A stretch of 64,000 nt of DNA from Ylistrum balloti (lineage: Eukaryota), in contig NW_026782166.1 of the NCBI RefSeq assembly GCF_031769215.1, forward strand, positions 186,001 to 250,000. Direction: 5' to 3'. Positions within the stretch are counted from its first letter, which is position 1; each line of letters begins with the position of its first letter. Under the pieces are notes generated by a model. That model had not been told where the DNA came from. It was given only the letters and a program-made list of their open reading frames with translations, and made no database searches. A program made the position numbers and the translations under genes. Positions 18,501-21,500 of the stretch are shown one piece after another.

Positions 18501-21500
18501 ACAAAACACAATACATGATCATCCCTTAACATGGATCCTTTGATCTCAGAGATAACCAACAACAGACCAATCTCAGAGGTGGCTGAAACTGACCAATGGG
18601 CACTGTAGAGTATATAAGTAAGGAGCCCCTAGGGATGACCATTAGTGGACACACTTCACACATTGGTGTTGCATCTATCTCTAACTAACCATGGACAAAA
18701 CTTCAGATAGAAACCTTGGGGCAGACATACAGAGACTAATGACAATACACAAGAACTCCACAAAACAACTCTATCTTATAGGTAAGTCTCACATTATCCT
18801 CTTCTGTATGCTGTTGGAAGTTATTATCTATATTTGTTATAAATGGATGTTTAACTTTACCGTTTAAAAAACATGTAAAGGTCATCCATTGTTCAATTTT
18901 TTTTTTCAATTATCTCTAACACTATCATACTGAGGAAACAAGTACTATATTTTACAATGTAAATTATGTTAACATGTTTTATGACATATTTTAAAGAACT
19001 TCATTTATTAGTTCAGTGTTTTACATATTATAGTTATAATAAAAACATAATGACAAAGTGAACAACAAAAATTATAAAAATTTTACCTCGTTCAGGACCT
19101 ATACTCTCTTGATCTTAAAATTGTAATGATGTTTTCATCAAGGAATTAGAAATGGTAAATATCCAAATCAAACATGAATACTTTGTCAAGGAAATTCACT
19201 CTACCTGAGAAACAACAGAAGGCTGAATGCAATCAATATAAAACATTGACAGTCTTTTGATGATATCTAGGCAAAAATATTATGAAAAAAACATGGTATT
19301 TATGATAAGTCTCATGAATTCCTCAAGTTTTTCTCCAAAAACTGAATAAACTGCAGCTAAATGGATGTTTCCTTTCATTTCCTTATTTAACAAATATACC
19401 AATATAAATGTAAATTGTTTAGTTTCATATCATTCACTCTAAATACACTTTTCATCTTTTTATATGATTTGTATTCTGCTGTAAAATCTGGTTCCTCCTA
19501 AAATATTTCTGTTTTTCACTACAGACATGCAGCTGGAAACCCTCACTAAAAAGATATTTAATGCCCAGTTGAATGGAGATCGTGGCCTGGTGTTAAGGCT
19601 CATGACCCGCAGGTCAGTGTTGAGTGGAGTGAGGAGGGTCTTCAGTCACTTAATACAAAACAAGACCAGTCAAATAAATGAGCTGTGTTCTCTCACACCT
19701 GAGGAGTTAGAAAGCAACATAAATGGAGAGATAACAGGTCATGTACCAAATCCTGTCCTGACCTCTGATGAACTTGCACCAGCTGTGACCGAAACATTCT
19801 GTCTGTTTACAAGATACAGTTAGGATCTCTGAGAAATGAAGAAAAGAGACCTAACATGGACATTTTACAACAGGTCAATGATGTACCTTAAATACTGTTT
19901 CTCACACCAGGTTTCTAGTCCCAGTTTCATCTTAGAAAAACCATTACAAAGTCATCAAAGTTCACCTGGTGACGTAGTAATCATGTTATTATTTTCCACA
20001 CCAAAGATATCTTGTTTTGTGCCAAAAGTTGCTATTACCATTGTTATTACTTAAATAAATTATTTATTAACAAAAAATATCTTTTCTATCAGTCATTTCT
20101 TGCCAAGCAAGGTGTCTTCATTAAGGAGAACTGACAGCATCCACTTGGTTCAAACTTATATCCTCAATAACACCATTACAACCTTGTACAAACACTGCCT
20201 CTAACTCACATCTGTGCCGTAGATAAGGAAATCTTGGGTCATACTGTGACAGGTGATGCGTGAATCCTGTTGGTCCATGTCAGGGAAAAGCTTGGATTCT
20301 CTTTCATCTGTAGTCCCAGCAGTCTCACCCTCAATCTGGAATACAGTAGTAATTGTCTCATTGATCGTACACACTCCAGAAACATCCACCTAACCAAAGT
20401 AACTGTTACAGTAAGAAAAGTCTTCTTTTTGGCCACAATTAAAAACTAATTGCCTATTATAGTAAGTACATAAGTATGATTTAATGCATTAATTATAAAT
20501 GAGATTGAACACAGATAGTATTTATTAGTAATTTTCTCAGGTCTTATACCCTTTTCCATCATAATACATCAAAAACATTGCTCAAAACATTGCATACTGA
20601 TACAAGATTAAAATCTTAATTGAAATTATGCAAATTATATGAACCAGACAAACTGAGATGTGTATAAAGCTCCCATATAAACCAGTACAACACTGTCCTG
20701 CCCTATCCCAGACCTATTTCCCTCTTTACTATGTTGAGGGAAGGTAGAGAAGGGTGTTGCAAAAACAATGGCACAGTATGACCATAGGCTTGGTGTACAA
20801 ACCATGTGAAGCTGGACTCTGCCCTCGAAGCTGACAGCAGCATAATCTGCATTGAGACAGATGTAGCCGACAGTCCCTAGGTATTCACGGTCTTTTAGCT
20901 TCTCTAGTCCTACAACACAACACAATATCATAAAATGTACCTGTAAGTCTCCCAGAAAATCACTTACTGTAACAGGCAGATTTAAATACTTGAATATCAT
21001 ACGGACTTATGTTGATCAGTAAAATGATCCTAAGTATGATTGCTAATAAAGATTTCTTGAATAGACTACTATATTCTGTAATGGTGAGTCTGCCCTAGGG
21101 ATGCCTACCATTGTCTCCCAAGAGGTAAAACCATGCTCGATTGTTCATCCCCACCGCCAAGTGGTATGGCCCAATTCCTAGAAAGGATGGCTCCACATCT
21201 ATAGGAATAGTCAATGGAGGGTCCTACAAACAGAAAGTACACATTTTATTTCTAAATTAAACAAAAATAAGTAAGGAACATAAAATGTGGCTAGATCATT
21301 TTCAATGCCACATTGTTTTTCTATTTGTTGCCATTATCAAGAAATTTGCTAAATATTAGGTTAAAGGGACATGCCTTCATTTGAATGGCAGAATTATGCT
21401 ACTGTACAGATTTAATTTTCAATTTTAAACCTGACAAAGGATCAAACTAATACATGTGCCTGATGGTGATAAAATGAAAGTAGAAATTATACAGAAAATA

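Follow-up and report, generated by a model that had tools for sequence, protein, structure and literature searches.

Is the short unit that lies antisense in an intron of WDR19 in the scallop Ylistrum balloti a gene of its own, and if so, what kind of protein does it encode and why does it lie there? We address this question for a 64-kb stretch of contig NW_026782166.1 (NCBI RefSeq assembly GCF_031769215.1, positions 186,001 to 250,000, forward strand), which we call the window and whose positions are used throughout. We regard it as probable that the unit is a real, independently promoted gene of a protein family restricted to pteriomorph bivalves and that its antisense position is tolerated housing, and we propose an adaptor-type role for its product from the architecture of the protein.

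A two-exon gene nested in WDR19

The coding segments 18691-18781 and 19525-19823 join to 390 nucleotides (nt), and their translation equals, letter for letter, the 129 amino acids (aa) of the NCBI entry “uncharacterized protein LOC132551129 [Ylistrum balloti]” (P0001), to which exon 2 is 100% identical. The two-exon nested gene is already annotated in RefSeq as LOC132551129. This gene is carried by contig JAUZWB010000858.1 (GCA_031769215.1), where it lies on the opposite strand within a gene of 1346 aa with WDR19/IFT122-type beta-propeller domains. In the window, the nested open reading frame (ORF) is on the plus strand and the two flanking exons are on the minus strand. These exons occupy the consecutive positions 90-133 and 135-185 of the Pfam profile PF15911, the second beta-propeller of WDR19, and the host is therefore WDR19. 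Read along the minus strand, the host intron 17766-20209 starts with GT and finishes with AG, and the nested gene, with promoter elements from 18567, an AATAAA ending at 20059 and predicted transcript ends, lies wholly inside it.

The original prediction, made from the letters of the window, had proposed a complete small gene at this place, and the elements it listed (two CCAAT boxes, TATA box, initiator, Kozak ATG, donor, acceptor, matching phase, a 129-aa ORF and AATAAA) are all present where it put them. It was also right that exon 2 alone appears in the program-made ORF listing, as an ORF of 98 aa. The RefSeq model, selection and synteny all agree with its central claim of a complete two-exon coding gene antisense in a WDR19 intron. 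Its term “orphan-like” is apt for a taxonomically restricted protein and too strong for one that is already a RefSeq model and has homologs. The features of the gene and of its host are as follows.

18098..18187, plus strand: distal upstream block, 77% identical to Pecten, inside a continuous Mizuhopecten alignment of 18098-18787; the surrounding intron is unalignable
18530..18560, plus strand: conserved upstream element TAACATGGATCCTTTGATCTCAGAGATAAC with a TCF-like CTTTGATC and a GATA-like AGATAAC, near-identical in Pecten
18567..18571, plus strand: distal CCAAT box, shared by Ylistrum and Mizuhopecten and lost by deletion in Pecten
18593..18597, plus strand: proximal CCAAT box (TGACCAATG), position kept in Ylistrum, Pecten, Mizuhopecten and the homolog L010, flanks varying
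18611..18618, plus strand: TATA box TATATAAG, identical in Mizuhopecten and L010, TATACATAAG in Pecten
18639..18645, plus strand: initiator-like CCATTAG with A+1 at 18641, 30 nt past the first T of the TATA box
18691, plus strand: start codon ATG in the context aaccATGg, with A at -3 and G at +4
18691..18781, plus strand: coding part of exon 1, residues 1-30 and the first base of Asp31; its translation equals P0001 1-30
After 18781, plus strand: donor ATAG/GTAAGT (slash at the junction); the Pecten equivalent is G/GTATGT
18782..19524, plus strand: 743-nt intron of the nested gene, in phase 1 and with GT...AG ends
Before 19525, plus strand: acceptor ttttcactacag/AC, pyrimidine-rich (...cactacag/), phase 1, where G and AC form the codon of Asp31
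19525..19823, plus strand: coding part of exon 2, residues 31-129 and stop; ORF 19527-19823
19821-19823, plus strand: stop codon
19824..20080, plus strand: 3' untranslated region (UTR) with AATAAA at 20054-20059 and a predicted transcript end
17602..17765, minus strand: WDR19 exon on the 3' side (host direction) of the host intron, PF15911 positions 135-185, E 5.5e-20, 86% identity to the Pecten exon
20210..20389, minus strand: WDR19 exon on the 5' side (host direction), PF15911 positions 90-133, E 4.5e-11, 86-91% identity to Pecten and Mizuhopecten; its far boundary is provisional

An Rfam search gave no match at the locus. The relatives carry GGTCATTC at the position of the initiator with equal spacing to the TATA box, and transcription of the nested gene would start at the initiator A at 18641. 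The gene is probably transcribed from its own CCAAT/TATA/initiator promoter independently of WDR19. The inducible or tissue-specific expression that had been proposed for it was deduced from the type of promoter and is overstated. The distal block 18098..18187 could be an enhancer or an extension of the promoter. In the conserved upstream element, the arrangement CCTTTGATC...AGATAAC is also retained in L010, a genomic contig with a homolog of 45% identity, and Mizuhopecten has a T-variant of it. The TCF-like and GATA-like motifs are, from their letters, candidate sites for these factors. For the TCF site this reading is weakened by Mizuhopecten, which carries TTTTGATC instead of CTTTGATC.

A motif of the form ATCTC(A/T)GAGA(T/A)A occurs four times around the nested gene, at 18449-18466, 18536-18560, 18571-18580 and 19825-19838. 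The last copy directly follows the stop codon and the others lie around the promoter. GATA-type cores, TGATAAG and AGATAAC, occur in two of the upstream copies and are both kept in Pecten, and the copy at 18536-18560 includes CCTTTGATC, which matches the optimal TCF/LEF site.

Conservation and selection in three scallop genera

Orthologs lie antisense within WDR19 in Pecten maximus (P0002, 64% identity, 129 aa) and in Mizuhopecten yessoensis (P0026, 70% identity, 132 aa), where the WDR19 hosts encode 1346 and 1357 aa, respectively. Both adjoin the host exon equivalent to 20196-20360, as the gene does in Ylistrum. From this shared position, the gene would have been antisense in this WDR19 intron since before the split of Ylistrum, Pecten and Mizuhopecten.

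The alignable parts of the host intron outline the gene. Pecten and Mizuhopecten can be aligned in just four blocks, namely 18098-18187, 18400-18791 with promoter and exon 1, 19467-19868 with exon 2, and 20006-20067 around the AATAAA. The last block is 90% identical in both relatives and its flanks are unalignable. Between the genera, neither the intron of the nested gene itself nor what remains of the host intron can be aligned. Exon 2 has 74% nucleotide identity to Pecten and to Mizuhopecten. The proximal CCAAT box, the TATA box, the position of the initiator, the 30-nt upstream element and the donor site are kept across the scallops.

The ratio of nonsynonymous to synonymous substitutions (dN/dS, method of Nei and Gojobori, NG86) is 0.35 for Ylistrum-Pecten, 0.23 for Ylistrum-Mizuhopecten and 0.32 for Pecten-Mizuhopecten, at a dS of 0.60-0.69 and with Fisher p-values of 5e-5 to 2e-8 for the three pairs. 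The helical part of the protein gives 0.22-0.24 in every pair. No indel or stop codon was found in the coding frame in the three pairs. These ratios clearly point to a reading frame under purifying selection and to a protein that matters. Since the frame is under selection and the elements of the gene are conserved in three other scallop-type sequences, the gene is more than a chance arrangement.

The frame is also intact in the DNA of run X1, with one synonymous change (19583), one change of Thr38 to Ile (19546) and no indel. The run differs from the assembly by about 0.4% across 17500-20500, with 13 single-nucleotide polymorphisms and a 22-nt deletion at 17937, and therefore comes from another individual or haplotype. 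The deletion lies in an A-rich tract of the host intron.

A family of small proteins in pteriomorph bivalves

A phmmer search of 1.84 billion representative sequences (E up to 1e-3) gave 15 matches. We consider 13 of them real (103-199 aa, E from 1.1e-42 in Pecten to 8e-4). The other two, P0005 (959 aa, with repeats resembling polyketide-synthase carrier proteins) and P0015 (an internal repeat), look spurious by eye and were excluded. A profile search gave 31 matches, of which 26 have E-values of 1.8e-47 to 1.2e-18 and five are short mytilid fragments reaching 3.5e-7. Short metagenome matches (P0037-P0043 and P0054) also look mytilid by eye. All named members are labeled “uncharacterized” or “hypothetical” and belong to four families of bivalves.

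Pectinidae: Pecten maximus (three loci and LOC117321211), Mizuhopecten yessoensis
Ostreidae: Crassostrea/Magallana virginica, gigas and angulata; Saccostrea echinata and cucullata; Ostrea edulis
Mytilidae: Mytilus galloprovincialis and edulis
Pteriidae: Pinctada imbricata

On this search evidence, the family as found so far appears confined to pteriomorph bivalves. LOC117321211 of Pecten maximus, which lies on a 56-kb contig, duplicates the WDR19-nested gene at 98% identity. For the Pecten paralog P0004, no gene with exactly that product was on record from which it could be placed. A literature search for 12 gene, protein and UniProt identifiers of the family found no paper naming any of them.

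The closest known relatives are uncharacterized pteriomorph proteins of about 130 aa (Pecten LOC117328740, Mizuhopecten LOC110455967, Magallana gigas K1RK29 and K1R0G9, Ostrea edulis LOC125650505-08 and Mytilus galloprovincialis LOC143045536), which have equal length and significant similarity over the full length. They share the layout of a basic hairpin and an acidic tail. Across the alignments A1, A3 and A4, S61, G65, K77, L84, D112 and R127 are invariant and K60 and T119 near-invariant. The family pattern reads L..H......L.D..I ... KS[VI]..G[VI][RK] and is followed by a C-terminal motif, DE[LM]A...T[EQ].FC...R, which includes D112, T119 and R127. A phase-1 intron splits the codon of Asp31 in Ylistrum, Pecten (two genes, including the paralog in TMEM232), Mizuhopecten, L010, C. 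virginica, Ostrea and the Mytilus copy L011, and L010 retains the CCAAT/TATATAAG/initiator promoter.

In a maximum-likelihood tree, the scallop WDR19 clade (support 100/99), the oyster clade (100/99) and the mytilid clade (99/97) are separated, and tree and loci together show that tandem copies are lineage-specific. The scallop WDR19-nested clade is a divergent branch, which differs from the oyster and mussel members in sharing 19-32% identity with them and in lacking their KW motif.

Genomic housing of the family

Antisense nesting is not special to WDR19 within this family. Five of six independent loci are nested antisense, in five different hosts.

Scallop WDR19 clade: host WDR19, antisense
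Pecten P0006: host TMEM232, antisense
C. virginica and Ostrea clusters: host NVL-like double-AAA gene, antisense
Three intronless Mytilus copies: host Sec7/BIG ARF-GEF gene, antisense
Intron-containing Mytilus copy (L011): host gene of 343 aa without a name, antisense
Pinctada copy: flanked by a LUC7 gene and an Ig-domain gene

The chance of such nesting in five of six loci is p ~ 0.002-0.005 if, as we assume, 20-25% of the genome is antisense-intronic, and six loci are few. The placement could be more than chance. Since the five hosts are different genes, a function tied to WDR19 or to cilia is unlikely. A bias of nested genes towards the antisense orientation is a known general feature, and the simplest reading of the placement is survival bias, that is, antisense insertions in introns survive over sense insertions. 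Only antisense copies would persist, because splice and poly(A) signals in sense orientation would damage the host. The antisense intronic position would accordingly be tolerated housing and not a regulatory device specific for WDR19.

Antisense nested genes have been catalogued in the human and Drosophila genomes. Nested genes in general are common, as are small proteins of restricted taxonomic range. The Ylistrum gene resembles the catalogued cases in that the whole predicted unit lies in one host intron on the opposite strand, has its own promoter and poly(A) signal and is kept across genera. To our knowledge, one family nested antisense in several hosts is not usual in these catalogues. 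As an antisense nested gene for a lineage-restricted small protein, the Ylistrum gene is of a well-known kind, real but ordinary.

A broader reading sees a family-level habit of dwelling in introns, in which cassettes of promoter plus gene sit antisense in large, broadly expressed hosts through their way of copying or through co-regulation with the host, and in which the protein would be an autoinhibited, oligomerizing ESCRT-III- or ING-like module of a new kind. We consider this combination unlikely.

It is also improbable that, in line with the transcriptional interference suggested by the original prediction, the gene acts mainly in cis, with head-on transcription towards the upstream WDR19 exon modulating transcription or splicing of WDR19 and the protein being secondary. 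Just about 150 nt separate the poly(A) signal of the nested gene and the WDR19 exon at 20210, the nesting in WDR19 is preserved in three scallop genera, and two hosts of the family, WDR19 and TMEM232, are genes of the cilium or flagellum. Such a role would leave the clear purifying selection on the coding frame to be explained, and interference is unlikely as the conserved role of the family because paralogs and homologs occupy unrelated hosts (an NVL-like AAA ATPase, a Sec7 ARF-GEF and the 343-aa gene).

A mobile origin, by retroposition or by duplication of a promoter-plus-gene cassette, with copies surviving antisense in transcribed genes and the WDR19 copy being an old fixed insertion, would account for the five different hosts. 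In Mytilus, the intron is missing from the three copies in the ARF-GEF gene and present in another copy, and the duplication unit of ~830-870 bp takes along ~325 bp of upstream sequence. On the other hand, copies are few (1-4 per cluster) and mostly local tandems, the tree tracks taxonomy, the positions are long-lived in scallops and oysters, and the antisense bias is shared with nested genes in general. The surroundings of the Ylistrum gene showed no transposase or reverse transcriptase, and neither terminal repeats nor target-site duplications. The intron holds just short repeats at chance level, and the 64-kb window contains no second copy or repeat of the gene. We therefore judge mobile spread improbable as an account of the family and prefer tolerated housing of an independent gene; a retrocopy origin may apply to the intronless Mytilus copies only.

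These three copies stand in tandem in Mytilus galloprovincialis (OZ263153.1, L005:9676-10501, 16187-17050 and 18785-19651) with 88-89% protein identity. Compared with the intron-bearing L011, they suggest that the intron was lost, or a retrocopy arose, before the copies were duplicated locally. In oysters, tandem clusters of 2-4 genes lie in the NVL-like host (L004:4287-4863 and 10001-10639; L009:10001-10746 and 15017-15585). Exon 2 of the cluster copies is 94% identical at the DNA level and exon 1 has diverged to 61% amino-acid identity. Oyster members have an acceptor immediately before the ATG, which implies an intron in the 5' UTR that the scallop gene does not have.

Protein architecture and proposed role

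AlphaFold2, run on an alignment of 23 sequences, placed helices at residues 3-47 and 50-86 in all five models with a predicted local distance difference test (pLDDT) above 90, and a single-sequence model agrees. Residues 90-110 are disordered in the models, and a C-terminal helix at 114-128 has a pLDDT of about 60. The linker at ~90-110 is acidic and contains proline, and the C-terminal helix is amphipathic. In all 11 members checked, the charge is split between a basic head (isoelectric point, pI, 8.9-11.5) and an acidic tail (pI ~4-4.6). No signal peptide or hydrophobic segment was seen by eye in the 129 residues, and the product would be a soluble intracellular protein. On helix 2, S61-x3-G65 forms an invariant small-xxx-small pair, which suggests a tight contact between helices.

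The helical first part and the acidic tail had thus been read correctly from the sequence, and homology search and structure prediction, proposed at the same time as checks, returned about 30 homologs and a confident hairpin. The family with which the original prediction compared it, of small uncharacterized lophotrochozoan proteins, was right in character and close in its sequence pattern to the one given above, and too wide in its range, which as found so far is pteriomorph bivalves only.

Searches for a relative of known function gave little. Pfam has no family that matches the exons or 12 members. The best hit is SpoVR_C at E 0.07, and the single-member matches differ from member to member and were set aside as noise. 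A sequence profile search of the PDB had no significant match; all it gave was an acetyltransferase at E 0.58 and, along 22 residues, the designed protein OR464, in which no single stretch passes alone. Both were rejected as relatives. Foldseek against the PDB and a wide VIA-align search gave a flat list of generic helical hairpins with Z-scores of 10-11 in which no family is prominent. The list includes the N-terminal domains of ING4 and ING5, Snf7/CHMP4B/Shrub, Vipp1/PspA, prefoldin, the arm of seryl-tRNA synthetase and designed proteins. The ESM Atlas gave nothing usable by features and generic coiled-coil hairpins by shape, together with a mollusc cluster of 110 aa that may be of the same family.

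Two of the fold matches deserve comparison. Like the N-terminal dimerization domain of ING4 and ING5, the predicted hairpin consists of two antiparallel helices of about 40 residues (template modeling score, TM, ~0.57-0.60 by query length and 0.68-0.79 by target length), and its long helices superpose on the alpha1-alpha2 hairpin of ESCRT-III (Snf7/CHMP4B) at a root-mean-square deviation (rmsd) of ~1 Å. It differs from both in having 10-14% identity, a Foldseek E of at least 0.05, no Pfam match and none of their other domains. The modeled hairpin is a very common, generic arrangement.

We propose that the nested protein is a small intracellular adaptor or regulator. Its hairpin may serve as a module for protein-protein interaction or oligomerization, of the four-helix-bundle type built from hairpin dimers, and the acidic tail with the C-terminal helix may dock back on the basic hairpin or recruit a (second) partner. 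Since there is no characterized homolog and no Pfam or PDB match, and the fold is generic, we infer this adaptor and autoinhibition mechanism from the architecture.

A more specific role, as a miniature ESCRT-III/PspA-type subunit in which the basic hairpin would bind membrane or polymerize and the acidic C-terminal region would restrain it, seems to us very improbable. The hairpin does lie on the Snf7 core, the CHMP4B hairpin and Shrub at 1.0-1.1 Å, with 79-81 residues superposed at Z 10.8-11.2, Foldseek also lists Vipp1/PspA, and the split into basic head and acidic tail is conserved. Within the flat list, however, unrelated hairpins score equally, among them those of ING4, of prefoldin, of designed proteins and of the seryl-tRNA synthetase arm. 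Snf7 (PF03357) was not matched in 12 members or in pieces of the window at E up to 1. With 129 aa, the protein also appears to lack helices alpha3-alpha5 of the ESCRT-III layout of ~200-240 aa, and its C-terminal motif would not fit the spacing of MIM1.

Expression and weight of the evidence

Evidence for expression comes indirectly from an oyster. The Logan contig L008 (SRR4419963), with 98% protein identity to C. angulata LOC128177224, unites three exons, one of the 5' UTR and the coding exons 1 and 2, that lie apart in the C. virginica genome. Because of this joining, L008 resembles a spliced transcript and indicates, if indirectly, that the family is expressed in a relative. In L008:1-310, an upstream segment ending in AATAAA and a run of 15 A is fused directly to the 5' UTR of the family member, and this part was probably assembled as a chimera that spans a poly(A) tail.

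Several points weigh against the reading as an independent gene with an adaptor-type product. The sole run found for the Ylistrum locus, X1, is DNA, spans the intron of the nested gene continuously and without joints, and leaves the start of transcription, the junction of the exons and the site of polyadenylation as predictions. L008 may be a processed retrocopy instead of a cDNA, and its first 300 nt look chimeric. The tail is the faster-evolving part of the protein in two scallop pairs (tail dN/dS 0.47-0.71) and not in the third (0.22). Finally, there is no homolog of known function and no Pfam family, and the fold matches are generic, with flat Z-scores of 10-11.

The weakest alternative, a spurious ab initio ORF among conserved blocks that are non-coding regulatory elements of WDR19, could appeal to the absence of RNA support in Ylistrum and to the low recognition of exon 2 by a protein language model, but is effectively refuted by dN/dS values well under 1 in each of the three pairs, which also lack indels and stops and agree in length and intron phase, by homologs of 20-45% identity at unrelated loci in other bivalve families, by the spliced oyster contig, and by independent Logan and ENA contigs that argue against a shared annotation error.

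Beyond the public annotation, our analysis adds selection and conserved nesting in three scallop genera, the delineation of the family and its fold, and the recurrent antisense-intronic housing. An anonymous RefSeq locus is now tied to a coherent, selected and lineage-restricted family with a confident fold. The gene is a clear-cut case of antisense nesting that has stayed in the same intron of its host in three scallop genera, with a dS of ~0.6-0.7 between them, and it raises the modest question of why nearly all loci of the family are antisense-intronic. Sequence reading alone had recovered the eukaryotic gene model correctly, down to its promoter, its splice phase and its poly(A) signal.

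Further observations on WDR19 introns

Outside the host intron, the block 17232-17344 also aligns to Pecten and is a putative WDR19 exon. The WDR19 introns of Pecten maximus contain large tandem-repeat arrays (L002:16074-20988 and L002:6659-7799) with periods of ~38 bp and ~56 bp. The 56-bp repeat unit includes a stretch of 24 nt that is identical to window positions 17232-17255, at the edge of the aligned block.

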